A stretch of DNA of 64,000 nucleotides from contig NW_027362767.1 in assembly GCF_046119375.1 (NCBI RefSeq), forward strand, positions 415,710,001-415,774,000. The letters are read 5' to 3'. The position numbers and the translations under genes are program-made. The DNA is from Phyllobates terribilis (taxonomy: Eukaryota). Below the pieces are notes generated by a model that ran no database searches, had not been told where the DNA came from, and saw nothing but the letters and a program-made list of their open reading frames with translations. The stretch's first letter is position 1; each line of letters opens with the position of its first letter. Below are positions 15,125-64,000 of the stretch, piece by piece.

Positions 15125-16693
15125 CAGTCATGGCCAAAAGTATTGAGAATGACACCAAAATTATATTTTCACATGATCTGCTGGCCTCTGGTTTTTATTA
15201 GTGTTTGTCTGATGTTTATATCACATACAGAAATATAATTGCAATCATATTATGAGTACCAATAGGTTATATTGACAGTTAGAATGAGTTAATGCAGCAA
15301 GTCAATATTTGCAGTGTTGCCTCTTCTTCTTCAAGACCTCTGTAATTCTCCCTGGCATGCTCTCGATCAACTTTTGGACCAAATCCTGACTGATAGCAGT
15401 CCATTCTTGCATAATCAATGCTCGCATTTTGCCAGAATTTGTTGGTTTTTGTTTGTCCACCCGTCTCTTGATGATTGACCACAAGTTCTCAATGGGATTA
15501 AGATCTGGAGAGTTTCCAGGCCATGGACCCAAAATCTCTATGTTTTGTTCCATGAGCCATTTAGTTATCTCCTTTGCTTTATGGCAAGGTGCTCCATCAT
15601 GCTGGAAAAGGCATTGTTGGGCGCCAAACTGCTCTTGGACGGTTGGGAGAAGTTGCTCTTGGAGGACATTCTGGTACCATTCTTTATTCATGGCTGTGTT
15701 TTTAGGCAAGACTGTGAGTGAGCCGATTCCCTTGGCTGAGAAGCAACCCCACACATGAATGGTTTCATGATGCTTTACAGTTGGCATGAGACAAGACTGG
15801 TGGTAGCGCTCACCTCTTCTTCTCCGAATAAGCTGTTTTCCAGATGTCCCAAACAATCGAAAAGGGGATTCATCAGAGAAAATGACTTTGCCCCAGTCCT
15901 CAGCAGTCCACTCCCTGTACCTTTTGCAGAATATCAGTCGGTCCCTGATGTTTTTTCTGGAGAGAAGTGGCTTCTTTGCTGCCCTCCTTGAAACCAGCCC
16001 TTGCTCAAAGAGTCTCCGCCTCACAGTGCGTGCAGAAGAACTCACACCAGCCTGCTGCCATTCCTGAGAAACTCGACACTGCTGGTAGTCCGATCTCGCA
16101 GCTGAAACAGTTTTAAGATGCGGTCCTGGCGCTTGCTGGTCTTTCTTGGGCGCCCTGGAGCCTTTTTGACAACAATGGAAGCTCTCTCCTTGAAGTTCTT
16201 GATGATGCGATAGATTGTTGACTGAGGTGCAATCTTTGTAGCTGCGATACTCTTCCCTGTTAGGCCATTTTTGTGCAGTGCAATGATGGCTGCACGTGTT
16301 TATTTAGAGATAACCATGGTTAACTGAAGAGAAACAATGATACCAAGAACCAGCCTCCTTTTAAAGTGTCCAGTGATGTCATTCTTACTTAATCATGACT
16401 GATTGATCGCCAGCCCTGTCCTCATCAACACCCACACCTGTGTTAATGGATCAATCACTAAAACGATGTTAGCTGCTCCTTTTAAGGCAGGACTGCAATG
16501 ATGTTGAAATGTGTTTTGGGGGTTAAAGTTCATTTTCTGGGCAAATATTGACTTTGCAAGTACAGTAATTGCTGTTAAGCTGATCACTCTTTGACATTCA
16601 GGAGTATATGCAAATTGCCATTACAAAAAATGAAGCAGTAAACTTTGGAAAAATTACTATTTGTCTCATTCTCAATACTTTTGGCCATGACTG
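15125..16693 (-). mobile_element. Near full-length Tc1 element; transposase frameshifted in the N-terminal part
   Basis: TA-flanked TIRs CAGTCATGGCCAAAAGTATTGAGAATGA. ORF 15302-16045 carries the DD34E triad ([23 protein letters not shown]). The true ATG at 16317 is out of frame with it. Confidence 0.9.
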
Positions 16694-35800: not shown

Positions 35801-38800
35801 CTTGTGGTCCTGCCAGTGTGTGCTTATTTCCCGCAGCAATCACTTGCCCACTGCAGCCAATCACTGGACACAGCGGTGATGCTTGCATGTACAGCACATG
35901 ACCACTGAGGCTGACGATTGGCTATGTATTACTTATGATTGCAAGAAGTAAGCAAACGCCATCATAGAGGAGGCTCTGGGGGAAAATGATGGATATATTT
36001 ATTTCCTCTATTCCATGTTTTTGGTTCCATTTTTCTAAATCCTGGAAAAGTCGCCTGCACTTGGTAAAAGCGATCAGTACAAGGCCTCATTTAGGTAGTG
36101 GCATTTTAGCACCACAAGTCTTGGCCCAGCCACAGATCTTATATCCTAGGTCCCCATCACTTGCCTCCTGCAACTTCTGCATTTCCTCCTCTTTCTCCGC
36201 CTGCCTTTTCCTCTCCTCTTCTCGATTTCTCCTCTCTTCGGCCTCCTTGGCTTCTCTACAGGCTAGCTTCAAAGCTTCCATCTCTTGTGCCATTCTCAGC
36301 ATTTCCTCCTCCTTTTCTTGAGCAATGGCAACCTCCTTCTCCAATTTCTGGATTTCTTTCATCTGATGGGCAATAATTTCCAATGCTTTGGACTCTGCTG
36401 GTGCAGCATCCGATGGGTGACGATCCAGAGACCTGTAGGGAAAAGAAAAAGTGGTTACAGATGGGAATACCAGTCAACCGGAAGCATGGCATAATGTAAA
36501 GGCTTTGTATGTTCGGACACGGTATGGGGGAGGGGAGAAGAGATACAGGTTATAAATATAATTCATATATTGCCTTAAAGAGGTTTTCCCACGAATAAAA
36601 GTTGATTTTAATCAATAGATCTTGGAATAATAATAATTTCCACAATAGGATGTATTTAAATAAAATGTTCCTGTGCTGAGATAATCTTATAAATGTGCCC
36701 CTGCTGTGTACTGTGTAATGGCCGTGTCTGACCGTGCAGGAACATGGTCTGATCATACCACAGCTCCTGGGAAGGGGAGGAAGCAAAAAGTAGGCATTAG
36801 ACCTACCGGTAATAGGGATTTCAGGAGTCCCTCATGACAGCACCATCAGGAGGTCGTCCTTCATATCCTTGATAGGGACAGGTAACACACAAGAGGTTAA
36901 AAGGCCCCTCCCTCCACCCCAACTCCAGTGATTTTTCAAGTACCACACCAGGATGGATGCAACTATTTTGTCTTCCTACAATCTGTTAACTTCACATAGC
37001 CGTTTTGGAATATTTAGGGAGGGGAAATAATGGGTGTTGTCATGAGGGACTCCTGGAAACCCCATTACCGATAGGTCTAATGCCTACTTTCCAGGATGTC
37101 CCTCCTGACAGCACCATCAGGAGAATACCAGAGTATACATTTTAGGGTGGGACCACTGCCTGGAGGACCTTTCTCCCGAAGGCCATTTTTTGACCTGATA
37201 GAATGTCCAATTTATAATGTTTGCAGAAGGTGTTCAGATTTGTCCAAGTTGCCGCTTTACAGATTTGGTCCACCGATGCTCCTGTTCTTTCTGCCCATGA
37301 TATGGACATAGCCCTGGTAGAATGGGCTCTAATATTTTCTGGAGGGAGATTTCCCTTCAGATGAGAAGGCCAGACTTATTACTGATGTAACCCATCTTGG
37401 ATTTTTATACATTCTCGGATGGAGACTGCCATTTTCCTCCCGAATTTCTCGATTCTGACCTGGAGCTCGCTTTGTTTATTTTCCGGTAGGAATGACACTT
37501 GTTGTTCCGAGTCTAGGAGGATACCCAAAAATATCTTTCTTCTTTATGGAATAAGGTGTGATTTTTCCCAGTTTATAATCCATCCTAGATTTCTTAGGGT
37601 CAGGATGGTTGATGTTACGTTGGCTTTTAGCTGTTGTGGAGATTCTGCCAACACAAGGAAGTCGACTACATACTGAATTATTAATATTCCTTGTTCTCTA
37701 AGAAACGCCATAGCTTCGGCCATCAGTTTGGTCTTTCCTCGGCCCCATGTATATTTACCAAAAGGAAGACAAGTGAACTGGTAATGTAGTATGGTGTCTC
37801 CCTCCATTAGTGCGAACCGTAGAAACCTTTGACTGTGATGGTGAATAGGTACATGATAATAGGCCTCTTTGAGGTCTATTGTACACATTACCATGTTGTG
37901 TCTGATTAGGGGGAGTCATTGACCTGATTAAAAAAAAATTCAAAATGAGATCAAACGACTGACTTGTTTAGAGATTTTAGATTTATAATCGTGCGATAAT
38001 CTCCCCCGGGTTTTTTTTTTTTTTATTGAAAAAAGACTTGAGTAGTAACCCAAGAACCACTCTGCCTCTGGTACTGGTATCACTGCTCCTGAGTTTATCA
38101 GATTTTTCACGTCCATCAGTAGTCTTTTGGAGACCTGAGGGCACTGAGTCGTTGTCAGGTGGAATTTTCCCTGCGGGATCTGTTCGGGTTCTATTTTATC
38201 GCCCTGCTTAATGGATTGGAGAATCCATGGACTGTTGGTAACCTCCATCCATGCTCTGTGGAAATGCTGGAGTCTTCCTCCCACTTTCTTGGCGTCATTT
38301 TCTACATGTGCTAACACTTGTAGCTGGAAGGGGATATCTCGATCTACCTCCCTTCTGGTAGCGCCACCTACCCGACTTCCCTTTTCCATAATATTCTGAC
38401 CTCTGCTGGTAACGTGGCTTCCGAAAGATTACACCTTCTTAGGTTTTTCCTCTGGGAACCCCTTTTTCCATTATTTCATGCAATACTGGACCAAATACCC
38501 AGAGGCCTTAAAAGGGAATGGCACATAATTTGCTTTTAGAGTGGCTATCCCCCTGACCAGGTTTTTAGCCATATTGCTCTTCTGGATGCAGTAGAAAGGG
38601 CTCTGTTCCTAGCAGCAAATCTAATTGACTCTGCCGAAGCATCACCAATACATCCTGTTGCCATTCTAAGTAGCGGAATGAAGTCGAGGATCTCCTCTCT
38701 GGATGTCTTCCTCTTTAGATGATCTCCCAGCTGCTCCGGCCATATTCTCATGGACCTTGCAACAGAAGTGGATGTGATATTGGTTTTTATTATTGCCGCC

Positions 38801-46176: not shown

Positions 46177-46438
46177 ATGGTGGGGTCAGATGTGTCGCAG
46201 GTGCAGCCGTGTTTCCAGCTGCTTCGTATGGGCTCCGACCACGGAGCGGTCCCGTCCTCTTCACAGGACCTGTACACCTTCCTGCCGGACTCCTCCCGCT
46301 GCACCTACCGGCTCGGGGCGCGGCCGGACCTGTGTGACGTCCCCCTGCCCGGGAAACCCGGCGTCCAGGCGGAACTCCACGCGGAGCGAGAAGCGAGCGG
46401 AGACTGGCGGGTGAAGCTGGAGAGCTGCTCCAACTGCG
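46177..46438 (+). CDS. TCF19: TCF19 coding exon 1 (FHA N-terminal half)
   Basis: Kozak GCCACCATGG; donor G/gtgact, phase 1. Confidence 0.92.
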
Positions 46439-49400
46439 GTGACTATCTCCGTGTGTCTCTCTCATCCGTCTTCTCTTTTAGGCTTTGTCTATGTAGATGG
46501 CGCCACGCTGACGCGTTTCGAGACGTCCAATCCGAAACTGGATGTGGCGACCTGGAGGAAACCAACGTCAAGATCCTTACAGTGAAGTGCGACATCCTAT
46601 GCGACCGCCGGCCATTAGGTCGTGGTGTAGTCACACGGTGCCCCGGTCCACCATGGATTACGCCGGTAGCTGCTTACGATAAAACCGTACACGGCCTGGT
46701 AGAGATGTGAAAGTCTATTATCACGGCCTGGTCAGTAATCTGCGGACGGGACAACCCCCTCCTATCCCTGTCATTGGTCGGCTCTTCTGGTATGACATCA
46801 CGCCGTAACGATGACTTCACACCAAGCCGGCCAATCAGAAGAACTGATGCCAGGAAGTAGGCGGTTGTCAGGCTTCCTGTCCAACAGCCACAGATTACTG
46901 ACCGGGGCACTGATTCGCCCCATAGTCCATGTGCGGACTCCAGACCTCACCTGATCTCACCGGTGTGCACGAGGCTGTAAGTTTGGGTCAAGAGATCCAC
47001 AGGCAGTCCTAGGCCACGTTCACACTTTCAGTATTTTCTCAATATTTCACATCAGTATTTGTAAGCCCAAACCAGGAGTGGGTGATAAATGCAGAAGTGG
47101 TGACGTGTTTCTGTTATACTTTTCCTCTGATTGTTCCATTCTTGATTTTGGCTTAGAAATACTGACCAAATACTGAACGTGGCCTATGCTGGGATTCTGC
47201 ATGTATTATATTATGTGCCATACGTGAAGGGGTGGCCCCTGTGTCATAGTATACAGCTTCACTGAAGTGAGGGGCCGAACTCGGAGTCGCTACCCCCTTC
47301 TAATTTTTCCTTGCACGGTCTCACTCCCTTACAAATGTAAGGACTGACTGTGAAAGGGCTGCCTCACTGAAGGTGCCGATGCTAAATGTAAATGCTGGTA
47401 TAAATATCATGTGAGAATATCCCTTTAAAGGGGTATTCCCATCTCCAAGATCCTATCTCAATATGTAGTAGGTGTAATAATAATAATATTATTAGCAAAT
47501 ACCTCCAATTAGAAGTGTAGTATAGCTTTCCGTTTTTTCATTGTCTCTTTCCTCATGTGCAGGACCTTAGGTATCCATGGTTACGGCCATCAGCAATGAG
47601 CTAACTCACTATATCAATGGTCGTAACCATGGATACCTAAGGTCCTGCAATGCCTGCCCATGAGATAAGTGACACAGAGAATCAGAAAAACCATACTACT
47701 TTTCTATTTGGAGGTATTTGCTAATATTATTATTATTACACCTACTGCATATTGGGATAGGATCTTGGAGATGGGAATACCCCTTTAAGGGTATTTTGTC
47801 ATCCACATAGATGGATATTGCTGTGAAGCGCCTGTGAACACAAGCACTTTTGCAATTTACGGTTTGTTAAAATTTTTAGTCTTTCCTGAGATATTAACAC
47901 TTTTGTTTACAGCTCATCACCTAGGAGACCGACCACCGCTGATAGCAGAACAAGCACAGAGCTTACCAGCTCTTTTCTATTGAGCTTGTAAGCACTGTTT
48001 TGAAGTCGGCCTGGATCGCTGTGATTGTGGTCTGTCACTTTATAATGTCTGCCAGTTTCAGCGCAGCGCTTACAAGCTACAGGGCAGCAGTCGGTTTCCT
48101 AGGTGACGAGATGTAAACAAATGAGAACTGTTAATTAGTGATAAGCGAGTATGTTCGGTTAACCCTTTCGGCGAGTATACTCAAGTGAGTACTGAGTATC
48201 TTCAGCGTACTCGGTGATATGTTTGAATCACTCCCGTGTGCATGATTTGCGACAGTTTGACAGCTTTATTACATGGGAGGAATGCTTGTTTCTTATTCAA
48301 ACATATCACCAAGTACGCTGAAGATACTCAGTACTCACTTGAGTATACTCGCCAAAAGGGTTAACCTAACATACTCGCTCATCACTAGTGTTAATATCTC
48401 AAGAACAGCTAAAAATTGTAATAAAGCGGTAAATTGCAAAAGTGCTTGGTTTTTCAAAGCCCAATGGTGATGGGAAAAGCCCTTTGAAGTTATCATACAC
48501 TTACCGGTGCTACTGCTTTTACAGCAGAGATAACCGACCCGCCTGCTATAGTTGCATCCTATGCGGGTGCCTCTGTTCGTAGCAGGAATGTTATGGCACT
48601 TGTGTCTTTGTGAGTTCTCTATAAATGTATAGAAGCTCTGATATCCAAAGGAGTCGGGGTCCTTACTGCATAGATAAGGTGATCACTTGGTCTGACCACT
48701 GGGACCCCTACTCGCCTGAAGGAATGGGCTCTGAAATGCCCCTTCGGAAAATAACAAACGCTGCTCTTCCTTCCTTTGCTCCATTCATTGTCTATGGGAC
48801 TGCCGGAGAGCGCTGTACTCTATCTGCAGTCGTCCAATAGAGAATGAATCCGTGTCACCGCTCTTCTCCAACAGGGCATTTCGGGGTTTCTTTCTTGGGA
48901 TCGGCGGGGGTCCCAACGGTTGGAACCCACCGATGTGCAAGTTAAGAATTTAAAATGGCTTCTATACTTGAAGGGGTTGTCCAGCACTGCCTTTCCTCCA
49001 CATCAGGAGGTAAGTGGCTGTGATAACGTTGCGTATTTCTGCCGGGACGCGTGCACGATCGATGCGTGTTGTGCCGTGTCCAATGAAGCGACTTCTGTTG
49101 AGGTTTCTGAAGGTCCATCATGCTTTGTCACTATATATGTCACATTTACTCTTTTATTTATTTTTTTCTTCATGTTTGCTGCCCTCGCGCCTTTCCTCCT
49201 ATTATTCCCCTGCGTTCTCTTGCACTTAAAAAGGTTGGTCCGATTTGGAAAACTATGGCTGCTTTTTTGCAAAAAATAGTGCCACATCTGTCAGTAGGTT
49301 GTTTGTGGTACTGCTTCTTAGCCCCATCCATATCGGGAGTGGAGTTGCAATAGCAGGCACAACGCGTGACGATAATTTTTGGCACAACTAGTGACTATAA

Positions 49401-51586
49401 TTTTTGGAGAAAGCAGTTTTCCTAATCCAGCACAACCCCTATCAGACACGTGGCATACTGATGTTCCCTTTTATATTTTTATTCTAGGTATTTACATCAA
49501 TGAGGTTCAGCTCCAGTGTCGTCAGAGGATAGAGCTGTCGGACGGAGACCTTCTCCGCTTCCAAGAGGGTCCTCCTTCACTGTCGCCTCCTTCTGCATCC
49601 CCCGACACATACTTTCTGTTCCAGCGGATTCGCGTGCGTCCTTTGGACTTCTGCGCCATCACATCACCACGTGCCCAGGCCACTCCTTCCACCGGCTTCA
49701 CCCCCGTACTAGGAACGCGGCGGCTTGGAGGGGAACGCGGGGCCTCTCCTCATTACACGACCGGAGCCACCGTCATCCTCAACTCCATTGGTAGCATCAG
49801 CAAGATGAAGCGTGAAAGGATGCACAATGGCGGACTGATAGGAGGGACAGTAGAGCTGACCAAGCCGCCGACTCCAGATTTACCGCTGCCGTCTCGTACG
49901 GGTTTGGAAAGAAGGAGAAGCCGCAGGAAAGCTCAGCACAAGGTCCTCTGTGAACTGGAGGAAGATGAGGAGCGGCAGGTGGAAGATGAAGATGAAGATG
50001 GAAAGAGGAAGAAAAAAAGAGGAAGTCAGAAGGAAGATGAAAAAGGGATGGCACAACAGGTGGAAATGGGAAGGTGAGGAGAGTGCTGTTTTTAAGGAAA
50101 AGTTGTTTGTTTGTTTTTTTAAAACAAACTTGAGCTTTACTCGCCCTCCCTAGGTCCTGTGCTGAGTCTTGGCAGCTGCTCCTAGTGTCTTTTATTGTCT
50201 GCAGCGCTGACGTCCTGTCGACAGCACTGCAACCAATCTGTGAGCTCAGAGACTGTGCTCAACTTGACAGCACAAGCTGTTCAGCGCTGCTGAGCTCACA
50301 GATTGGCTGCAGTGCTGTCGAAGTGACGTCAGAGCAGCAAATGATAACAGACACCGGGAGCAGCAATGGAGACACACCTCTGGACCCAGGGAGGGTGAGT
50401 AAAGCCATTTTTTTTCCTTTGCAGCCAGAGGACTGAGGTTTTCTGGAAACTCCTTTAAATTTAATTTTAAGCTTTGTGATAAATTCAAAAACCCATCGGA
50501 TCCTTCCCTAATCCCGAGTTGGGGTTTATGCACACGGCTGTTATTATACATAGCCAGGGTGGGGGGAGATCTCCATACAAGCCCAATGGCATTCACTGCC
50601 GTCTATAACCTCTCACTGCCCGAGCTGTGTTCAGGTCTTTCGATACCTAGTGGAAACCATCAATATGTTTGTCAGAGATCTCCTTTAATCCCGGAAGGAT
50701 TTTTTCCCCAGATTTCTGTGTAGAGCATGGTGTAAAGACAACGCATCCCAAAATGCATAAAGCCAGGAAGGAATCCTTTTTGCTTTTAGTTATGATTCTT
50801 AATATGTTGCACCATAGATCAGGCTCAGAGAGACGCTGTAATAAAAGGGCCAGTCATGCCCGCCGTGCGTGGCAGGAGCCACCGGACATTACTTGCACTA
50901 TTTTCACTGATACACGTGCATGCTGGGATTTTTAGGTCTGTGTGAACGGAGGCTACAGTGGGTCCGTGTGACGTCCATTGTGCTCATCTGAAGCTGGTCG
51001 TGTTCACACAGCCATGTATTACACTATAAATGCTCCTGTTCTCCCATCCGAGTAAATTACTGGGTTATGCCATCCCTTTTTGATCAGCAGGACCCCTACT
51101 GTTCCTGAAAATAAAGGGGGCCCTTAATAGGTTTTCTCTGCACATCAGACATGGCTCCATTTAAGTGAGATTTACACTGTAATCTGCAACAATATGTCGG
51201 TATGAAACTTTGCAAATGTACTGATTTTTCATTCATGCATACGTGTGTTTTGCCTGCAGGCAGGTCGCTGTTGTCCTTTTTTTTCGCCTCCGTCCCTCGA
51301 TGCCGTCTGAGGCCATTTTTGCTCATTTCACTTCATTCCTTTTTGCAGGAAGCCTCGTGGTCGTCCAAGAAAGAACCCAGCTCCTCCGACGGTTGTGTCC
51401 CAGACTGTCTCGTCCCAGACGGTCTCCAGTGCAGAACCTTGCGCCTGGCAATCGTGCTGCCTCCCGCAGGAAGACACTGTGAGCTGGGTGCAGTGCGACC
51501 GCTGCGACTCCTGGTACCACGTCGTGTGCATCGGCCGCAGCCTGACCTCCCTGCAAGACACAGACTTCCACTGCGGCTGCACGTGA
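46177..51586 (+). CDS. TCF19: Transcription factor 19 (FHA + PHD); complete 3-coding-exon gene, 361 aa
   Basis: join(46177-46438,49488-50073,51349-51586) = 1086 nt with compatible phases. Motifs: PCFQLLR, DLYTF, CTYRLG, AELHAE, ELSDGDLL, FLFQRIRVRPLDF, VILNSIGSISK, RGRPRK and a C-terminal PHD. Confidence 0.94.
47429..47784. mobile_element. Palindromic TTAA-flanked MITE in TCF19 intron 1
   Basis: Near-perfect long inverted arms AGGGGTATTCCCATCTCCAAGATCC..., with TTAA on both sides. Confidence 0.85.
48136..48387. mobile_element. hAT-type MITE, same family as the one in the hsp70 pseudogene, nested in another MITE
   Basis: TAGTGATAAGCGAGTATGTTC termini; shares the internal GCATGATTTGC...TTTATTACATG; TSD CTGTTAAT/GTGTTAAT. 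Confidence 0.8.
49488..50073 (+). CDS. TCF19: TCF19 coding exon 2
   Basis: Acceptor ttctag/GT; donor AG/gtgagg; 586 nt. Confidence 0.92.
51349..51586 (+). CDS. TCF19: TCF19 last coding exon (AT-hook-like RKPRGRPRK and PHD finger)
   Basis: CAWQSCCLPQEDTVSWVQCDRCDSWYHVVCIG...FHCGCT*. Confidence 0.93.
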
Positions 51587-54500
51587 CCTGTGAGCGCTAA
51601 TTTCTTTTCCCACCATCCCTTTTTTTTAATTTCTCTGTATTGTGAGAGCTGCGGCCCCGTTCTTTTCCCCCCTGGGCTGCAGCACATTGCACATTACAAC
51701 CGGTTTTATGCATCATTCAAGGCATTATTCTATCAGATCCGTCTACAATAGGGACATTATCGTACCCCATTCCCTTCATTATTTAACCCGTTTTCCTGGT
51801 CTGAGTCCAGGTCACTTTTTTTTTTTTTTTTTTTATTTATTTTTTTTATTATTCAAACGACCATAACGAACCCAATCGGACACATCAGCACCACTCTTTG
51901 CTAGATAAAGACTGGTAGAAAACACAGAAATATTTATATATCTTACCAATCATTAAAGAGGTTCTTGATGTTAAAGAGGGTCTGCGTTCCCCGGCTGTAG
52001 TTTATTTTTATTTTTTTTAATCAAACAATCTGTGCTTTACTCCCTATCCCCAGGTCTAGCGATGAGTCTCCACCACTGCTCCTGGTGTCTATTATTTGTC
52101 TGCAGTGCTGATGTTACATTTTAAAGCACTGCAGACAATCGCTGAGCTCAGCAGCTCTGCAAGAATTGACGGCACAATCCGCTCAGAGTTGCTGAGCTCA
52201 CTGATTGGCTGCAGCGCTGTCAACATGGTGTCGCCGCTGCAAGCCATAACGGGCACCAGTAGCAGCAGTGGAGACTCAGCGATGGACCCAGGGGGAGGGG
52301 TGAATAAAGCACAGTTTGTTTTTTTTTCTTCAAACTGGAGCCGGGGGACTGGGGTTTCCGGAAATGGAAGACCCCTTTTTAAATCTAAGCTGATTCACCC
52401 TATGGTGAACGTGTGATGCTTTGTACAGGACTGGACACGAGGGGGCGCTGTGTATAAAAGCCGGCAAAAGTAAAATGTCTGTCGCTATCCGTTCACCAGA
52501 GAGCTTGATTCTGGGTTGTTGCTTAGAAAGTCTTAGAAACGCAACATTTATTGGATATGTGCACACAGGAGTCTTTTTGATGAGTTTTCAGAGCAGAAAC
52601 TCCCAAGCATTTGGAGAGTTTCCACTCACTTTTCACTTGATTTCAGCTCCAAAAACTCAGTGCGCATATTGCCATTAAAAGACACAGGCCACTTAAGGAA
52701 TTTCTCTCCTTTTATAGCAAATCTTTACTTGCTAAAATTGAAGATCATTTTTCCACTATAATTTACACTGTAGGTGGTCTTTCCCAAAAAGTGGAGTAAA
52801 AAGCTGCAAATTTTGCACAATAGAGACATGCTCCAAAATCTCCCACTTTTTTTCTGCAAGAAAACTGGAACAAGTCAATTATTGTCTCCCCATATTAGTT
52901 TAAAAAAATATATAATAATTATGAGGCCCAATAGCTCATCCAGGAGCCATTTTGCCCCATATAGAAGATATCTGGACTTTGTCAGTCTGCAGAGTCAGAT
53001 AGGCAGCAGACTTTTCTGCTGTGGATTTGCATACAGAAAATCTACGTATTAAAGTAGCAGCAAAGTGAATGATATTTTAAGGAATCTGCTCTGCAAATTG
53101 GTCGGTGCCACATATAATAATAATAATTATTCATTATTATGCTGGGGTTAGAGGTGGTCGTTAAACTATTAATCAGTCCTTTAATGGTCTATTTTAGACA
53201 ATGCGATCATATTATATCATTGTTCTCGGCAGCACGTCTTCTCTTTACATAGGACGATGTTCTGCCGGCTAAAAATCATCGCACCGGACGAACAAGTATT
53301 CGTTGGGGTGATTGACAGCCTGATAGTCAGGAAGGAGCATTAATAAGAACACCCAGATAAAACCAGCATTAGTTAATTTTTGTACAATTTTTCACAAGGA
53401 AATTCTCACATTTTTGTGCGTATTTATCACCGAGGAAAAGATCAAGGTTTTAACCCTACTAGTAAATTTTATAAGGAGGGGTCTAATGCAAGGAATTAAA
53501 ATATAATTTCATTCCTCACTTCTGCGGTGGCCAAAAACAGGGTTATATAAATTAAGGGAAATATCTGCAAGAGCCAAGGAAAGAGCGGATCGCGTGATCT
53601 GTAAGGGTAGCTGTTGGTTTTTGTGGGTTAATGGTCATACTCGGTCCCGGAAAGTGTCCAGTCCTGAACCATATACACTAGGACTCTCACAAAGCTATAA
53701 ATGACTGATGATTTTTATTATTTTTTTTAATTCCCCCCCACCCTCCAAATAAGTTATAATGTGAAATATTTTATTTAAAGGGTCATTCCCAATACAGTAA
53801 GTTCACCACTAGCTTTGGGATTCCCAGCGATCCTGGAACATGGCTCTGCAGCCCCGTCCTGAATGGAGCAGTGGAGATGCCCATGCTCGGAGCAGTGGAG
53901 TTGCTCATGCTCGACCTTTTCTGCATTCATTGTCTATGGGACTGTCGGAGGAAGCGGAGTACAGCACTCTGCTACTCGTCATAGTACCATAGTCAACCGA
54001 GCAGAGTTCCAGAGTCCTGATTGTCGGGATCGCAGAATAATGGTCCCAGCGATCAGTAAGTTAGTTCCTATCTTGGGACTAACCCTTTAATTTATAGCAC
54101 ATGGGACACATGATAAAAAAAAAATTAATAAAGTGAAGCGCCCTCCTCATGGCTGCTTTGCATGGGAACATGAGAATATTTTGTGAGCAGTTCAGATATC
54201 CTCCATATAACAATTGCATAATAAAATCTTTAGCGTAGATTTCCACAATCCGTTTGGATTTGCTGCCGATTTTATTCAGGTAATTTTGAAGCAAATCTGC
54301 TTCAAAGTCCATATTGTTTTGTCTGAGGTGTAAAATTATGTCAAGTGTGAATCCAAACCAATTTACATTCCCTGCCATAGAGTTCACTAATAGTAAGTAT
54401 TCCGGCTGCCTGCAGCCACCACTAGGGGGGGCTCACTATATACTCAGCTATTTTTTTGCCAGATTCCAACAGATTTTGCACAACTATTGGTAATTTTTTC

Positions 54501-56124
54501 TCAAATTTTACACCACTCTTGACAGTTTCTTGGAAAATGGGCTGGGCTTAGTATGGGGAGAATGGAAATTTTATTAGTGTGTTCCTCCATTGATTTCAAG
54601 GGTAGCGCTATGAATTTATCTAATATAAATTCCTCCTAGTGTTAGCTGCAAATAGAATGACTCCGTGGCTGTGTTCACACAACCGTACCCGTAGTACACA
54701 ATTTTTTTGATTACAATCCACGTTACAGACGCAATTCCCAGCCCAATCACTGGACTCTTGACCTAAACTAAACAGTTGGTTGAATAATGTTTTTTTTAAT
54801 TTGCCCCTATTTGTGCTGGATTCAAGGGATTTTAGTGTTTTATTTAACAAAAAAAAAAATGAAATTACCTGATGAGGAACCACAATTTGTTAATGTTTCC
54901 TTAGCTGGCTGGAGAAGCATATCAGCAGGCTCTATGGTACAGAGAGCTATGGGGGCAGCAGGGTATCGTCTACTTCCTCGGGTGATTGTACTTTTGTATT
55001 ATTTTTGCACTTTTTATAGTAATTTTTCTCGTGTATTCGCAAGTATTAAAAAGGTTGTCAACCTTTTGGGTCAGTGTTGTTATTACCTAAAGGGGTGTTC
55101 TCATGTTATTAAATTGCTTTAGTTAGTTAGGACAGCTTAAAAATAATCAAGTCCGCAATTGACCTACTGCTGTGAGCGCTTTTATCTTGCATAGTGTACA
55201 GCTGGATTCTAAGGAGCTTGGCCACCAGAACCTGCCAGAGTGTACACAGTAGTTGCACTCCAGCCGAGGAGATAGCTGACTGGGATGTTAGGAATTCTCT
55301 CCAGCCCATTGATTTCTGTACAGCAGTTAGCTGCTCAACTCCCTCCTTCTCTACTCCTCAGTCCTCTAAAATCATTGGCATCAGAAGTTTCCAGAGCAGA
55401 TCACCTAATCATGGCTCTCACTGTCCAGATCTGTGTGTTTGTTCAAAGACCCTGTTATTTCTATCTGTATATACAGTGATAATAATGCAAATTTAAGAAC
55501 ACACACTGATAGATCATTAATATGTAGTAGCGTAATAAAATTCCTGACCAGAATGAGCTGCTCAAGAGACAACTTGATAATACAGTAACATGGAGCAGCA
55601 GTGCATATGATCCCAATGGTCAGGACGTTAACCTCTATCATTGGGGAATAACTTACAATCCTGAGAATATCCCTTTAAGGAGAGCGCACTGGCACAGCGG
55701 ACATTTGGTGTGCGGCAGAAATTGTACAGAAGAAATCTACATATTCAGGATTTTGTGTCCCCCACCCCCCAACTTTTCCCTTTGTTTCGTTCAGTGGTAT
55801 TAAATGTTTGTAACTCCCTCTCAAATTTAATATATGTTCCATATTTTGGGTGGGCTGTTCCCTTCCTATGAATTGCAATAAACAAAGCACTATTTACTAA
55901 AAATTTGCCTGTCTCGTGTTTCACATGTTTCCTTCATGTGTATTATTTAGTTGGATGACACTAAGGTATGCCAGTGTGAAGTCTCATAAACTCTTTAAAG
56001 AATTGCTCCAATCAAAATGTAAAAAAAAAAAATTAAATATATTACATGGTGCAGCGCCACTTTTTTCCATTACTTTTTATTAGAAGGTACTCCGTAAAAA
56101 ATACTGTGGGAGTTTGTCATTTTA

Positions 56125-57644
56125 CAGTGGGGGGAAAAAGTATTTAGTCAGTCACCAATTGTGCAAGTTCTCCCACTTATAAAGATGAGGTCGGCCTGTA
56201 ATTGACATCATAGGTCGACCTCAACTATGAGAGACAAAATGAGAAAACAAATCCTGAAAATCACATTGTCTGATTTGGAAAGAATTTTTTTTCAATTTTT
56301 GGTGGAAAATAAGTATTTGGTCAATTACAAAAGTTCATCTCAATACTTTGTTATATATCCTTTGTTGGCAATGACAGAGGTCAAACGTTTTCTGTAAGTC
56401 TTCACAAGGTTGGCACACAATGTTGCTGGTATGTTGGCCCATTCCTCCGTGCAGATCTCCTCTAGAGCAGTGATGTTTTGGGGCTGTTGCTGGCAACACA
56501 GACTTTCAACTCCCTCCAAGGGTTTTCTATAGGGTTTAGATCTGGAGACTGGCTAGGCCACTCCAGGACCTTGAAATGATTCTTACGAAGCCACTCCTTC
56601 GATGCCCTGGCGGTGTGCTTGGGATCATTGTTATGCTGAAAGACCCAGCCACGTTTCATCTTCAAAATCTCACGATACATGGCCCCATTCATTCTTTCAT
56701 GTACATGGATCAGTCGTCCTGGTCCCTTGGCAGAGAAACAGCCCCAAAGCATGATGTTGCCACCCCCATGCTTCATAGTAGGTATGGTGTTCTTTGGATG
56801 CAACTCAGCATTCTTTCTCCTCCAAACACGCTGAGTTGTGTTTCTACCAAACACTTCTACTTTGGTTTCATCTGACCATATGACCTTCTCCCAATACTCT
56901 TCTGGATCATCCAAATGCTCTCTAGCAAACTTCAGACGGGCCCGGACATGCAATGGCTTAAGCAGGGGGACACGTCTGGCACTGCAGGATTTGAGTCCCT
57001 GGCGATGTAGTGTGTTACTGATGGTAGCCTGTGTAACGTTGGTCCCAGCTCTCTGCAGGTCATTCACTAGGTCCCCCCGTGTGGTTCTGGGATTTTTGCT
57101 CACCGTTCTTGAGATCATTTTGACCCTACGGGGTGAGATCTTGTGTGGAGCCCCAGATCGAGGGAGATTATCAGTGGTCTGGTATGTCTTCCATTTTCTA
57201 ATTATTGCTCCCACAGTTGATTTCTTCACACCAAGCTGCTTGCCTATTGCAGATTCAGTCTTCCCAGCCTGGTGCAGGGCTACAATTTTGTTTCTGGTGT
57301 CCTTCGACAGCTCTTTGGTCTTCTCCATGGTGGAGTTTGGAGTGTGACTTTTTGAGGTTGCGGACAGGTGTCTTTTATATTGATAACAAGTTCAAACAGG
57401 TGCCAGTACTACAGGTAATGAGTGGAGGACAGAGGAGCCGCTTAAAGAAGAAGTTACAGGTCTGTGAGAGACAGAAATCTTGCTTGTTTGTAATTGACCA
57501 AATACTTATTTTCCACCAAAATGTGAAAAAAATTTTTTCCAAATCAGACAATGTGATTTTCAGGATTTATTTTCTCATTTTGTCTCTCATAGTTGAGGTC
57601 GACCTATGATGTCAATTACAGGCCGCTCTCATCTTTTTAAGTGG
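56125..57644 (-). mobile_element. Tc1 element with a 288-aa defective transposase
   Basis: ORF 56462-57328 has the HTH, WSDETK and SPDLNPIE motifs, but the second catalytic Asp reads QHNND and there is a short deletion. The right TIR is truncated. Confidence 0.88.
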
Positions 57645-57794
57645 AATGGAATATTTGCTAAAAAGAACCGCAATTCCCTTCAAGAAGTAAGTGTTATGTG
57701 AAGGTCTAAGCTGTCTGAAGTAGCGCTAGTGTGAGGCAGTATTGTACTAATTAGGTAAACTCGTTCAACGTTATCTATTAGGCCAGTGGTTTAA

Positions 57795-59068
57795 CCCCTT
57801 TCCAACCCTTGCCGTATTAGTACGCACATTTGCGTACCCCCGGTTCAGTGAGGGCTGCTGCGCTGAGCCCTCACTGAACCGAGCACATGTCAGCTGATTC
57901 TTACAGCTGACATGTGCCCGCAACAGCCGCGGGTGGAATCGCGATCCACCCGCGGCTGTTAACATGTTAAATGCCGCTGTCAATCTCCGACCGGCATTTA
58001 ACGCGTGCTTCCGGGTTGCGCGTCATAAGCCCCGCCCATCGGCGACCCCATCACGTGATCGCGGGTCACCGATGGGTGGGCATGAAAACCCAGGGTCTGC
58101 AGCAGACGCCTGTGGTTGTCATGATCTCGTCGCTATGAGCGCCACCTAGTGGTCGGCGCTCATAGCACAGGACCATTTCTGCTATATGCAGGGGATCTGC
58201 TGATCCCATGTATGTAGCAGAGACGATCAGACAACTGCTGCTTCTATAGTCTCCTATGGAGACTATAGAAGCATGCAGTAAGTGAAAAAAAAATGTTTTT
58301 AAAAATATAAAAAAATATAAAAGTTTAAATCACCCCCCTTTCGCCCCATTCAAAATAAAATATAAGAAAAAAAAACCTACATACAGATATTTGGTATCGC
58401 CGCGTTCAGAATCGCCCCATCTATCAATATAAAAAAAGAATTAATACAATCAGTAAACGGCGTAACGAGAAAAAAATTCTAAACGCCAGAATTACGTTTT
58501 TTGGTCGCTACAAAATTGCAATAAAATGCAATAACGGGCGATCAAAACATTGGATCTACCCCAAAATGTTATCAATAAAAACGTCAGCCCAGCGCGCAAA
58601 AAATAAGCCATCACCTGGCCACAGATCACGAAAAATGGAGACGCTACAGGTCTCGGAAAATGGCGCTATTTTTTTTTAGTTTTTTTTTAACAAATTTTGG
58701 AATTTTTTTTCACCACTTAAATATAAAATAACCTATACATGTTTGGTGTCTACGAACTCGTAATGACCTGGAGAATAAAGAATGGCAGGTCAGTTTTAGC
58801 ATTCAGTGAACGTGGTAAAAAAAAATAAATAAAAAACAACTGTGGTATTGCACTTTTTTTGCAATTTTACTGCACTTGGAATTTTTTTCCCGTTTTCCCG
58901 TACACGATATGGTAAAACTCGTAATGGCGTTGAAAAGTACAACTTGTCCCGCAAAAAATAAGCCCTCACACGGCCATATTGTCCAAAAAACAAAGACTCT
59001 ATGGCTCTGGGAACAAGGGGAGCAAAAAACGAAAAAGCAAAAACGACAAAACCCAAGGTTGCGAAGGG
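57795..59068. mobile_element. Non-autonomous TTAA/CCC (piggyBac-like) element
   Basis: TTAA/CCCCTT...AAGGGG/TTAA termini; no transposase. Confidence 0.75.
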
Positions 59069-59631
59069 GTTAATAACCTTTGGGAAGTGACAACTCTCTA
59101 TTCTTAAATGGATTTTCTGGGATCAACAAAAATTATTAGGCTCAAGTGAACAAAAAAAGGATCCAATATGCTGTGACTGCCTGCAGCGGTCACAAGTGTA
59201 GAAAACAGACCAGAATATTAAACATAGATCTTTTATGTGAAATTAGCAGGTGGGTACCTGATAATTTACTTTAAAAGATCTATGTTTACTACGCTGGTGT
59301 ATGTTTTCTACACTTGTGACCGCTGCAGGCAATCACTGATCTCCGAGGTCTCTTGTCATACACTGCTGAGGCAAATGATAAACTGCAAGGTCACATGGGT
59401 AGATGGCACCTAACAGCTACAGGGAATTAAATAGAGTTGCGCTGGAGCTGCAGGAGATGTATTGACTAAATATCGCTTTTTTTTATATTTTAGGCTATTT
59501 CCTCGTTTTTGCTGATCCCAATGAAAACCTATGAAGGACAGGTTCAGACAGGCATATTTTGCAATTCTTGTATAGACCGCTGTACCCGGACTGACCGGGT
59601 GTCTCCCAACCAGAACTTACAACCTTATATA

Positions 59632-61242
59632 CAGTACAGACCAAAAGTTTGGACACACCTTCTCATTTAAAGATTTTTCTGTATTTTCATGACTAAGAAA
59701 ATTGTACATTCACACGGAAGGCATCAAAACTATGAATTAACACATGTGGAATTATATACTTAACAAAAAAGCGTGAAACAACTGAAAATATGTCTTATAT
59801 TCTAGGTTCTTCAAAGTAGCCACCTTTTGCTTTGGTGACTGCTTTGCACACTCTTGGCATTCTCTTGATGAGCTTCTAGAGGGAGTCACCGGAAATGGTC
59901 TTCCAACAATCTTGAAGGAGTTCCCAGAGATGCTTAGCACTTGTTGGCCCTTTTGCCTTCACTCTGCGCTCCAGCTCACCCCAAACCATCTCGATTGGGT
60001 TCAGGTCTGGTGACTGTGGAGGCCAGGTCATCTGGCGTAGCACCCCATCACTCTCTTTCTTGGTCAAATAGCCCTTACACAGCCTGGAGGTGTGTTTGGG
60101 GTCATTGTCCGGTTGAAAAATAAATGATGGTCCAACTAAACGCAAACTGGATGGAATAGCATGCCACTGCAAGATGCTTTGGTAGCCATGCTGGTTCAGC
60201 ATGCCTTCAATTTTGAATAAATCCCAACAGTGTCACCAGCAAACCACCCCACACCATCACACCTCCTCCTCCATGCTTCACGGTGGGAACCAGGCATGTA
60301 GAGTCCATCTGTTCACCTTTTCTGCGTCCCACAAAGACACGGTGGTTGGAACCAAAGATCTCAAATTTGGACTCATCAGACAAAAGTACAGATTTCCACT
60401 GGTCTGATGTCCATTCCTTGTGTTCTTTAGCCCAAACAAGTCTCTTCTGCTTGTTGCCTGTCCTTAGCAGTGGTTTCCTAGTAGCTATTTTACCATGAAG
60501 GTCTGCTGCACAAAGTCTCCTCTTAACAGTTGTTGAAGAGATGTGTCTGCTGCTAAAACTCTGTGTGGCATTGACCTGGTCTCTAATCTGAGCTGCTGTT
60601 AACCTGCGATTTCTGAGGCTGGTGATTCGGATAAACTTATCCTCAGAAGCAGAGGTGACTCTTGGTCTTCCTTTCCTGGGGCGATCCTCATGTGAGCCAG
60701 TTTCTTTGTAGCGCTTGATGGTTTTTGCAACTGCACTTGGGGACACTCTCAAAGTTTTCCTAATTTTTCAGACTGACTGACCTTCATTTCTTAAAGTAAT
60801 GATGGCCACTCGTTTTTCTTAACTTAGCTGCTTTTTTCTTGCCATAATACAAATTCTAACAGTCAATTCAGTAGGACTATCAGCTGTGTATCCACCAGAC
60901 TTCTGCACAACCCCATTTATAAGGCAAGAAATCCCACTTATTAAACCTGACAGGGCACACCTGTGAAGTGAAAACCATTTCCGGTGACTACCTCTTGAAG
61001 CTCATCAAGAGAATGACAAGTGTGTGCAAATCAGTCATCAAAGCAAAAGGTGGCTATTTTGAAGAACCTAGAATATAAGACATATTTTCAGTTGCTTCAC
61101 ACTTTTTTTGTTAAGTATATAATTCCACATGTGTTAATTCATAGTTTTGATGCCTTCAGTGTGAATGTACAATTTTCATAGTCAAGAAAATACAGAAAAA
61201 TATTTAAATGAGAAGGTGTGTCCAAACTTTTGGTCTGTACTG
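59632..61242 (-). mobile_element. Full-length Tc1 element, same family as 10647-12014; transposase broken by stops and frameshifts
   Basis: Same long TA-flanked TIRs; ORF pieces 60207-60752 (LSDESKF) and 59876-60202 ([16 protein letters not shown]). Confidence 0.9.
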
Positions 61243-61474
61243 TATGCCTATTAGTTTGTGAGTTTGGGGTCAGTCCGTAAACAAATCGTGAAATACGCCC
61301 GTGTAAAACAGACCTAACAGTCGGCTGACTTTTTTTAAAATATTTTTTTCTCTCTGTTTACAGCTCAGTGTCGCCCCCTACTGAGCTGCAAAGAAGAACC
61401 TTCCCTGCAATCAGATGACCTTTGCATTTTTATCCTCAAGTACACTTAGAAAAAAATCACAGAATCTTTTCCAC

Positions 61475-61480
61475 TTTATT
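61475..61480 (-). terminator. Candidate poly(A) signal of the NPDC1-like gene
   Basis: AATAAA on - about 400 nt after the stop codon. Confidence 0.45.
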
Positions 61481-61880
61481 GACTGTACCTTGTAAATATT
61501 CATTTTATAAGACTGGTCGCTCCTTACTAGTGTTGAGCGAATTTGTTCGGCATGTCAAATTCGGGTTTGCGTTCGGGGTTCTGGCTTGTTCGCGCCTAAA
61601 AATCGGCTCTGCCCATGAACATCTCTGATTTGCCATGCTGTCACGCAGATAACATCAGATAACATCAGAATAAGATCATTAGAGAAGATGTTGATTGAAG
61701 GTATATTTAACCAATTCAAGCAGTGACTGAGGAGAAGCTGTCAGAATGGTCAGGGCCGGGGGAATGGAAATAACTACATGTTCACTATACTGATAGTTTA
61801 ATGCACAGAATTGGGGAACGCTTGCTGATACACTTTATAAATGCTGCCTGTAAGATATATGATGTCCATATTTCACGTTC

Positions 61881-61937
61881 TCACTGCTTGGTCCGTGATG
61901 GGTCAAACAGAGGATTGTGGACCTCCATCTCTCCTGT
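61881..61937 (-). CDS. NPDC1L: NPDC1-like last coding exon
   Basis: TGEMEVHNPLFDPSRTKQ*. Confidence 0.92.
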   Translation of the reverse strand, partial: TGEMEVHNPLFDPSRTKQ

Positions 61938-63604
61938 CTATAAACAGAAAAAAGGGGACACGTTTGATTAGTACTTGCTTTAGAGAAGTATTTATTAGAG
62001 GGGGACTTCCGTGGCTTTACGCACCGGGGCAAGTCCAGGACACTCGTAGATGGCAAATTCCTCCACCTCTGCCTCCGAGTCGGTGGACAGTTGTTGGCAG
62101 GGCTTCTTTTCTGAGCTTCTGGGAGTAATGGGAATTATTAGATTGGAAGACAAGGAATCACAATTGGGTGGACACCATGCTGGTGACTGACGCTCATTCA
62201 CGCTCTGCTCCTTACCTCTCCTGTGCCTGGAAGTGCTTCTTCTGAGCACTATAATGTTGCTTATAATGAGACATCTGATCTGGTGACTGTAGGGAAGGAA
62301 AAAATAAAAATGATAGGATTTATAAACCATTGTATGTAGCAATGTCCAAGCTCGCAAAGGCTCACAAGAAGTACCTACAATTGATCTAGAACTAACTGTA
62401 AAGTGAATCTGTCAGCAGATTTTTACAATGTAATCTGACAGCAGCATGGTGTAGGGGCAGAGATCCTGATTCCAGCTAGGTATCATTTAGTTTACTCAGT
62501 ACAGAAGTTGTGATACAATCACAGTTTTCTCTGCTGTAGATTTAGCAGTGCTCAGAATGCTGAGCCCTGTATAACCCAGCCCACGTCACTGATTGGCAGC
62601 TATCTGTGCATAACTCCGCCTACATCACTGATTAGCAGCTTTCTTGTATAATCCCACCCACATCACTGATTGGCAGCTTTCTGTGTATAACTCCGCCCAC
62701 ATCACTGATTGGCGTCTTTCTGTGTATAACTCCGCCCACATCACTGATTGGCAGCTTTCTTGTATAATCCCGCCCACATCACAGATTGGCAGCTTTCTAT
62801 GTATAACTCCGCCCACACCACTGATTGGCTGCTTTCTGTGTATATTGACAGAGAGCTGCCTATCAGTGGTGGGGGTGGGAATGGACCAGGAGACAGGAGA
62901 CACCTAGTCCTCTAAAACATCTGGTAACCCTCAACCCAACCCCCAATGATGAACCAACAAAAAAAAAGGTGAAAATGTAAAAAATAGACGTAAAATTAAA
63001 GAAGAATAATGCACAAATGAAAAACCCAAAAAAAGGTGTAAGTGCGATAATGAATCTGCCCTTTTGCATACAGTTTGGTGTGGACCATGTCTTACCCTTT
63101 GGCACGGGTGCTGTCTGCTGCCTTTGCAGGCTGTATACGCCATCTCTTGTGCCAGCCTGACTTCTTTTTGTAGCCTGAATAAACATGGAGAATACAGATT
63201 AATGGGCAAAATCCAGATATATTGAGGAATAACCTGCATAAAATCCATCATAATAACTAGAACTAGCCCTAGCTGTAAGATAACTGCTGAACGATCCGCC
63301 CTGATGCTTCCATGTCTGACCTTGTACAGATGAGAGATGGTATAATGCTATTAGTCCGGGTTTGTGGACTGATTGTTGGGTTATGATTTATAGCCATAAT
63401 ATGAATACTAAAATGGATAATGAGCCCTAATACTGCCGCCAGTCTTGTGCCACTTATCCGCATGGAAGTTGGCACTATATATATTTTTCTACCAGGTATC
63501 GGTGCTATTTTAGCATCAAGCTTTTTGCATTACGTACCTGTACCAACACATCGCCACAACAAGTATTCCAGATAACGCGGTCAGGCTGCAGATGACTATC
63601 AGAG
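61881..63604 (-). CDS. NPDC1L: NPDC1-like (NPDC1/CAB-1 family) single-pass membrane protein; last five coding exons, 5' part outside the window
   Basis: join(63604-63538,63174-63096,62286-62216,62118-62025,61937-61881), all GT-AG with compatible phases. Product: LIVICSLTALSGILVVAMCWYRLQKEVRLAQ...EFAIYECPGLAPTGEMEVHNPLFDPSRTKQ*. YECPGLAPTGEMEVxNPLFD is the NPDC1 family signature. The NPDC1L rather than NPDC1 label rests on synteny. Confidence 0.9.
62025..62118 (-). CDS. NPDC1L: NPDC1-like exon (acidic tract and YECPGLAP)
   Basis: SSEKKPCQQLSTDSEAEVEEFAIYECPGLAP; 94 nt. Confidence 0.92.
62216..62286 (-). CDS. NPDC1L: NPDC1-like exon
   Basis: SPDQMSHYKQHYSAQKKHFQAQE; strong acceptor, donor gtaagg; 71 nt. 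Confidence 0.85.
62569..62844. repeat. About 39-bp tandem array, 7 copies, inside an NPDC1-like intron
   Basis: Unit approximately ATAACTCCGCCCACATCACTGATTGGCAGCTTTCTGTGT. Confidence 0.85.
63096..63174 (-). CDS. NPDC1L: NPDC1-like juxtamembrane exon
   Basis: RLQKEVRLAQEMAYTACKGSRQHPCQR; donor gtaaga; 79 nt. Confidence 0.9.
63538..63604 (-). CDS. NPDC1L: NPDC1-like transmembrane exon
   Basis: LIVICSLTALSGILVVAMCWY; acceptor tttgtttcag, donor AG/gtacgt; 67 nt. Confidence 0.88.
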
Positions 63605-63624: not shown

Positions 63625-64000
63625 CACTGCTCAAAAAAATAAAGGGAACACTCAAATAACCCATCCTAGATCTGAATGAATGAAATATTCTCATTGAATA
63701 CTTTGTTCTGTACAAAGTTGAATGTGCTGACAACAAAATCACACAAAAAGCATCAATGGAAATCAAATTTATTAACCAGTGGAGGCCTGGATTTGGAGTC
63801 ACCCCCAAAATTAAAGTGGAAAAACACACTACAGGCTGATCCAACTTAGATGTAATGTCCTTAAAACAAGTCAATATGAGGCTCAGTATTGTGTGTGGCC
63901 TCCACGTGCCTGTATGACCTCCCTACAACCCCTGGGCATGCTCCTGATGAGGTTGCGGATGGTCTCCTGTGGGATCTCCTCCCAGACCTGGACTAAAGCA
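63625..64000 (-). mobile_element. Tc1 element end, running off the right edge
   Basis: TIR-like CACTGCTCAAAAAAATAAAGGGAACAC followed by antisense transposase C-terminal sequence from about 63870. Confidence 0.75.

Follow-up and report, generated by a model that had tools for sequence, protein, structure and literature searches.

NPDC1 is a single-pass membrane protein with an extracellular N-terminus (PMC12848103, PMC11093223). In complex with mGluR4 it binds extracellular ligands and mediates their endocytosis (PMC12848103). A peptide from its cytoplasmic tail has an affinity of about 3 μM for the Golgi tether TBC1D23, which it binds via an acidic T-[LIV]-Y motif, and this marks NPDC1 as endosome-to-Golgi cargo (PMC11093223). 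A paralogue, NPDC1L, was named in 2013 and described as a nine-exon gene of coelacanth, turtle, squamates and sharks, but not of frogs (Frankenberg & Renfree, BMC Biol 11:56, PMC3665618); in 2022 it served as a synteny marker (Sukparangsi et al., PMC9492771). The published gene order is NPDC1L, POU5F1 and then TCF19 in tail-to-tail orientation (PMC3665618, PMC9937046). Frogs are described as carrying tandem copies of POU5F3 (PMC3665618, PMC9937046), and a figure of the Pou5f1-Tcf19 neighbourhood marks the loss of Pou5f1 in Xenopus and Bufo (Cao et al. 2023, PMC9937046).

The DNA analysed here, referred to as the window, is a stretch of 64,000 nucleotides of the Phyllobates terribilis genome (C7:415710001-415774000, assembly of 10.57 Gb). 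Its right end very probably contains the 3' half of the frog orthologue of NPDC1L, annotated elsewhere as 'NPDC1-like' and in Xenopus as npdc1.2. On this reading NPDC1L is the NPDC1 paralogue which arose with the duplication that gave POU5F1 and POU5F3.

Five exons were found on the minus strand between 61881 and 63604, each preceded by a polypyrimidine tract and an AG acceptor. The first four are followed by a GT donor, and the fifth ends in TGA. Numbered within the complete gene (see below), exon 5 (63538-63604, 67 nt) has AG/GT sites and, as judged from a hydropathy peak, encodes the end of the ectodomain and the transmembrane helix. Its product is 100% identical to that of Ranitomeya imitator NPDC1-like, and the length of 67 nt is kept in frogs and turtle. 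The juxtamembrane cytoplasmic segment is encoded by exon 6 (63096-63174, 79 nt), for which AG/GT sites and RNA-derived contigs were available. Exon 7 (62216-62286, 71 nt) is joined to exon 8 (62025-62118, 94 nt), which encodes an acidic cluster and the motif A-I-Y-E-C-P-G-L-A-P. The coding part of exon 9 (61881-61937, 57 nt) adds the conserved end T-G-E-M-E-V-H-N-P-L-F-D and the stop codon TGA at 61881-61883; a 3' UTR of about 250 nt follows (61628-61880, minus strand), spliced contigs reaching 61628/61629. Two sequencing runs show a 10-bp indel at 61646 within this UTR, and a tandem repeat is present in an intron of the gene. Joined in one frame, exons 5-9 encode 121 amino acids comprising the transmembrane helix and the tail. 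This peptide matches the Pfam family NPDC1 (PF06809) with an E-value of 3.2e-24 and 86 bits (cut-off 23); the match covers positions 215-336 of the 352-position profile. The five spliced exons with a transmembrane helix and an NPDC1 tail that a first-pass annotation had read from the letters are thus borne out by splice sites and profile match alike.

When the genome was scanned in six frames with PF06809, an additional, Cys-rich exon was found 4.7 kb to the right of the window edge (31.6 bits, profile positions 40-88). Exons 1-4 were located by aligning frog orthologues to the right flank, all on the minus strand: exon 1, which carries the ATG, at C7:415789632-415789584, exon 2 at C7:415778853-415778722, exon 3 at C7:415778514-415778416 and exon 4 at C7:415778014-415777835. 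All splice sites are canonical. The full gene thus consists of nine exons over 17.8 kb, the window holding its 3' half (exons 5-9). Exon lengths of 49, 132, 99, 180, 67, 79, 71, 94 and 57 nt give an open coding sequence of 828 nt and 275 amino acids, and the nine-exon layout, with its lengths and phases, is common to the X. laevis, Leptodactylus fuscus and turtle orthologues. The predicted protein comprises, in this order, a signal peptide, a six-cysteine module (cysteines at residues 21-57), a Ser/Thr/Pro-rich stalk, a transmembrane helix and a cytoplasmic tail of 100 residues. On the hydropathy scale from which signal peptide and transmembrane helix were called, peaks occur solely at residues 1-19 and 149-175 (about 153-173), indicating a type I single-pass topology. 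The C-terminal motif Y-E-C-P-G-L-A-P ... N-P-L-F-D is unaltered. The gene had been described as intact from its 3' half, and the open reading frame over all nine exons, with canonical splice sites throughout, agrees with this.

Eight small public sequencing runs from two studies each contain about half of the 31-mers of positions 61700-62400. Such a share fits exons and UTR without introns, while a DNA run of 0.1-0.2 Gb from a 10-Gb genome would contain far less. The runs are presumed to be RNA, and spliced contigs argue for this origin. Four of them (X1, X2, X8 and X9), covering both studies, were examined over 61300-62450. Contigs of all four skip exactly 61938-62024, joining 61937 to 62025, and contigs of X1, X2 and X9 skip exactly 62119-62215, joining 62118 to 62216. 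Both skipped introns begin with CT and end with AC, the equivalent of GT..AG for a minus-strand gene. In X8 the second intron extends over 62116-62215 (62115 joined to 62216), which corresponds to use of a NAGNAG alternative acceptor and removes one Arg codon; NPDC1L orthologues occur both with and without this Arg. At 62287 the contigs of all four runs have a loose end whose sequence is that of the exon 6 3' end. Support for the exon 5/6 junction is comparative, the exons of other frogs being identical in length and phase. One spliced contig, at 1308 nt, is long enough for the entire mRNA.

The coding sequence was compared with those of L. fuscus, X. laevis (dS near saturation) and turtle (dS saturated). 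Against L. fuscus dN/dS was 0.167 at an unsaturated dS of 0.60; divided by part, it was 0.054 for transmembrane helix and tail and 0.28 for the ectodomain. NPDC1L is therefore a functional gene: it is transcribed and spliced, and purifying selection acts on it, most strongly on the tail. That it might instead be a relic of the loss of POU5F1, decaying as a pseudogene or still transcribed without having a function, is very improbable. The partner POU5F1 is indeed gone, evolution of the ectodomain is fairly rapid (omega 0.28), and in mammals NPDC1L has been lost altogether (PMC3665618, PMC9937046). A relic, however, is difficult to reconcile with an intact nine-exon reading frame, canonical splice sites, exon lengths and phases kept from Xenopus to turtle, an omega that, with dS unsaturated, is 0.17 for the whole protein and 0.05 for the tail, retention in more than 25 anuran species and the spliced transcripts.

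The relationship of NPDC1L to NPDC1 was analyzed in a maximum-likelihood tree (IQ-TREE) of 49 sequences rooted with amphioxus. The window protein falls into an NPDC1L clade with 100/100 support, as the first-pass annotation had proposed. This clade contains 22 NPDC1-like proteins of frogs (Xenopus npdc1.2 among them) as well as sequences of two turtles, the skink Lerista and five chondrichthyans and the NPDC1-like protein of coelacanth. Coelacanth npdc1a, teleosts, axolotl NPDC1, frog NPDC1, birds and three lizards make up the other side of the tree. Sister to the window protein is Ranitomeya, and its nearest relatives are R. variabilis (93.8% identity) and R. imitator (92.4%). Identity is 52.5% to X. 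tropicalis npdc1.2, and only about 41-44% over the full length to turtle, coelacanth and shark NPDC1L. Protein searches retrieved 'NPDC1-like' entries of over 25 anurans, for instance Rana, Bufo, Hyla, Ranitomeya, Bombina and, under the name 'npdc1, gene 2', Xenopus; 'NPDC1-like' of turtle, coelacanth and shark followed. A search with the tail gave 78% identity to Lithobates NPDC1-like and just 39% to frog NPDC1 proper; to NPDC1 proteins in general, tail identity is about 39-46%. Short signatures also distinguish the two groups: NPDC1L proteins carry L-S-T-[DE]-S-E and E-[VI]-H-N-P-L-F, present in the window protein as L-S-T-D-S-E and H-N-P-L-F-D, whereas NPDC1 proteins carry S-D-E-E-N-E and E-V-[KR]-N-P-L-F-D-D.

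The frog NPDC1L branch is long (0.68), and the order within the clade departs from the species tree, turtles pairing with sharks (90/81). Both features would be compatible with an NPDC1 duplicate specific to frogs or amphibians that landed beside TCF19 and is distinct from the ancient gnathostome NPDC1L. We give this origin as little credence as decay of the gene, since the frog sequences join turtle, coelacanth and shark NPDC1-like at 100/100 and stand apart from frog and salamander NPDC1, the signatures L-S-T-[DE]-S-E and H-N-P-L-F are shared, and the gene occupies the same TCF19-side position as in the turtle locus and in the NPDC1L of the literature.

A separate NPDC1 is present on the same chromosome, 150 Mb away (C7:265277601-265323706). 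Its exons 7-9 are 88-100% identical to NPDC1 of E. coqui, beside which this second copy is placed in the tree, within NPDC1. It lies directly upstream of two POU genes on its own strand, 12 kb and 105 kb past its last exon (C7:265335652-952 and 265428348-778), in both of which the POU-specific domain is split at about profile position 38. In a genome-wide search with a turtle class V POU exon they did not rank above class III POU genes (72% against 82% identity), although they alone were matched across the entire exon. We infer from where they lie, from the intron that interrupts their POU-specific domain at a shared position and from the literature that they belong to class V; on that assignment, NPDC1 and the two POU genes correspond to the NPDC1-POU5F3 arrangement with tandem copies described for frogs. 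That the window gene is NPDC1 proper, the neighbour of pou5f3, with no distinct paralogue, has next to no probability, for although it belongs to the same Pfam family and its Nanorana and X. laevis orthologues are labelled plain 'NPDC1', the gene at C7:265.3 Mb has NPDC1-type exons followed by the two POU genes, the tree parts NPDC1L from NPDC1 at 100/100, and the window gene has the diagnostic residues of NPDC1L and TCF19 as its neighbour.

The neighbouring TCF19 gene is encoded on the plus strand (46177-51586). It has three coding exons, the first starting at 46177, the middle one around 49472-50074 and the last ending with the stop at 51586. The predicted protein shares 99% identity with 'transcription factor 19 [Phyllobates terribilis]'; for the other frog TCF19 proteins among the matches listed above 60%, identity is 61-85%. 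A PHD finger was detected in the last exon (PF00628, E 2.6e-5). The TCF19 exon pieces gave no Pfam match to the FHA domain and weak FHA leads of at most 0.87 (Atlas), so that the identification is based on protein identity to frog TCF19, not on FHA. With stops at 51586 (TCF19, plus strand) and 61881 (NPDC1L, minus strand), the two genes face each other tail-to-tail, 10.3 kb apart. The same tail-to-tail pair of TCF19 and NPDC1-like is found in X. laevis and L. fuscus, 5-6.5 kb apart, and in X. tropicalis and Engystomops the two genes have consecutive locus tags. Upstream of NPDC1L, 8.6 kb from exon 1, lies an intronless HSP70 gene, as is the case in L. fuscus, and a tubulin gene is located upstream at a distance of about 164 kb. 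The human counterparts TCF19, HSPA1 and TUBB are located at 6p21.33. The tail-to-tail pairing noted in the first-pass annotation is thus evident from the facing stops, and its term "MHC-linked" holds only to the extent that TCF19, HSP70 and tubulin match genes of that human locus.

The same annotation had assumed that POU5F1 is missing from this neighbourhood, and that its former position should be sought upstream of NPDC1L, beyond the right edge of the window. The absence is supported. A genome scan with the POU-specific domain returned 24 exon matches at E-values up to 10, none of them within 21 Mb of the window. In the window and 200 kb rightward, tblastx and tblastn recognized no POU-like sequence at protein level; the best tblastn E-value was 0.26 anywhere in this region. 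A borderline tblastx match (E 0.003) 52 kb to the right was rejected, as it involves out-of-frame repeat-like sequence of a turtle intron. The position, on the other hand, has to be corrected. In the turtle Lepidochelys kempii a gene with Pou and Homeodomain matches lies 4.7 kb downstream of NPDC1-like on the same strand. Together with the published order, this places the former POU5F1 slot in the TCF19-NPDC1L intergenic region (51587-61880, 10.3 kb), which is the place of POU5F1 in turtle and coelacanth and lies inside the window, downstream of NPDC1L; upstream there is HSP70, not POU. Within the slot the best tblastn E-value for POU was 19. The region is partly filled by Tc1/mariner elements, with transposase open reading frames at 56462-57328 and 59876-60752. 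Removal of POU5F1 from the order NPDC1L-POU5F1-TCF19 yields exactly the frog arrangement. NPDC1L has therefore kept its ancestral place beside TCF19, the intervening POU5F1 having been deleted in the frog lineage.

The literature searched reports no function for NPDC1L, mentions of the gene being concerned with locus evolution. As topology, Cys-rich module, acidic cluster and invariant tail end are kept, NPDC1L may, by analogy with mammalian NPDC1, act as a recycling cell-surface and endosomal cargo or receptor protein. Its ectodomain would then bind extracellular partners, while sorting signals in the tail would direct endocytosis and the retrieval from endosomes to the Golgi. In its loose form, the acidic TLY motif of cytoplasmic tails calls for [DE] in at least three of five positions and then for [TS][LIV][YFW] (Cattin-Ortola et al. 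2024, PMC11093223). The tail encoded in the window reads A-E-V-E-E-F-A-I-Y and, with alanine at the [TS] position, departs from the TBC1D23 cargo motif. A, D or G occupies this position in 20/20 neobatrachian NPDC1L proteins carrying the motif. T or S is found there in all archaeobatrachian frogs seen, in nearly all other vertebrate NPDC1 and NPDC1L proteins and in amphioxus; NPDC1L of the stingray Hypanus, with L-V-Y, is an exception. The replacement of threonine by alanine suggests that TBC1D23-dependent retrieval of neobatrachian NPDC1L may be weakened or handled differently. A more far-reaching scenario, in which the neobatrachian ancestor lost the motif threonine and NPDC1L was thereby released from retrieval and took on a new trafficking route or role, appears rather unlikely to us. 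If it were true, the frog protein would represent a naturally occurring separation-of-function variant in a receptor family that has hardly been studied. The lineage-specific change of a sorting motif in the tail thus offers one concrete hypothesis on NPDC1L.

As a discovery, the gene is overstated in the first-pass annotation. Databases (NCBI, UniProt) already list it for over 25 anurans under the names 'NPDC1-like' (in full, 'neural proliferation differentiation and control protein 1-like') or npdc1.2, and the history of the locus has been published. Frog NPDC1L beside TCF19 is already known, and the window gene is an ordinary orthologue of a named paralogue. What is added here is minor: a corrected position for the former POU5F1, an isoform that arises from the NAGNAG acceptor, and the change of the tail motif in neobatrachians. 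For annotation the analysis fixes the full nine-exon model, shows expression and constraint and places the POU5F1 slot in the window. Because NPDC1L is functionally uncharacterised and absent from mammals, frogs, notably Xenopus with npdc1.2, lend themselves in practice to its study.

In comparison to the NPDC1L described in the literature, the Phyllobates gene belongs to the same clade, has nine exons and is located at the duplicated POU5 locus, on the side where TCF19 lies. It differs in that POU5F1, downstream in turtle and coelacanth, is absent and NPDC1L abuts TCF19 directly; this absence is the secondary loss known for frogs and does not define NPDC1L. Relative to anuran NPDC1-like and Xenopus npdc1.2 it is a direct orthologue with the same exon structure, and nothing of substance is different. 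Its introns and intergenic region are larger than those of other anurans and filled with transposons and satellite repeats, which is in keeping with a genome of 10.6 Gb. With mammalian NPDC1, of which it is a paralogue with different genomic neighbours, the window protein has in common the type I topology, the Cys-rich N-terminus, the transmembrane helix, the acidic cluster and the invariant tail Y-E-C-P-G-L-A-P-T-G-E-M-E-V-x-N-P-L-F-D. However, it does not contain the S-P-G-D-K-K-L-A-Q...M-Y-H-Y-Q-H-Q-K-Q-Q-M block of NPDC1, and where NPDC1 has the T-V-Y bound by TBC1D23, the window protein has A-I-Y.

At the acidic T-[LIV]-Y motif, the part of the NPDC1 cytoplasmic tail that is recognised by TBC1D23, NPDC1L of the window reads F-A-I-Y (exon 8, 62025-62118). 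The alignment table revealed that the motif threonine is replaced by alanine, aspartate or glycine in every motif-carrying neobatrachian NPDC1L sequence (20/20). Threonine or serine is kept at this position in NPDC1L of Bombina, Discoglossus, pipids, Rhinophrynus and pelobatoids, and is also found in nearly all remaining NPDC1 and NPDC1L sequences. Exon 8 also carries a NAGNAG alternative acceptor (62115/62118), which adds or removes one arginine codon and is used in run X8, one of four public runs presumed to be RNA. In the 3' UTR, contigs of two of these runs (X1 and X8) share a 10-bp deletion at 61646, located inside a direct duplication.

The introns of NPDC1L contain several kinds of repeats. 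Tandem units of approximately 39 bp in intron 6 (62560-62900) belong to a genome-wide family with 80-91% identity, long arrays of which were observed on contig C7 (at 455.27, 62.48 and 57.77 Mb) as well as on C4468, an unplaced contig. Intron 1 harbors a tandem array of approximately 3.5 kb that repeats every 147 bp (C7:415781400-415785000, loci L015/L016), 7.4-11 kb to the right of the window. Open frames of 44 aa are present in all three frames of the minus strand of these repeats; the array is an intronic satellite and non-coding. Intron 4 houses a Tc1/mariner-type transposase ORF spanning the window edge (63886-64000, running on to C7:415774791, minus strand). Two further minus-strand ORFs of this type occupy the former POU5F1 slot between TCF19 and NPDC1L, one with a 288-aa open frame starting with ATG (56462-57328), the other at 59876-60752, and a fourth lies at 15305-16303, likewise on the minus strand.

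Upstream of NPDC1L, 8.6 kb from exon 1, an intronless HSP70 gene of 645 aa is encoded on the minus strand (L017:4233-6167, equivalent to C7:415798233-415800167; PF00012, E = 6e-264), and the same arrangement is found in Leptodactylus fuscus. The right flank also contains, all on the minus strand, two large exons without a Pfam match, of 681 aa (L024:2506-4548) and 602 aa (L025:100-1905), and a tubulin gene approximately 164 kb upstream of NPDC1L (L032:9378-9998). On the other side, upstream of TCF19, a Glu/Lys-rich, coiled-coil-like ORF is located on the minus strand (36087-36383), where published synteny predicts CCHCR1 (PMC9492771). A Pfam search of this ORF gave no match.

In the maximum-likelihood tree of 49 NPDC1-family proteins, the sequences of the lizards Pogona, Hemicordylus and Varanus (P0102, P0151 and P0009) cluster with bird NPDC1 (support 96/92), while that of the skink Lerista (P0092) clusters with turtle NPDC1L (support 100/99). 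Hence, squamates as a group seem to retain both paralogues. This placement is at odds with the conclusion reached in 2013, which assigned the squamate sequences to NPDC1L and had NPDC1 lost by deletion together with POU2 (PMC3665618).
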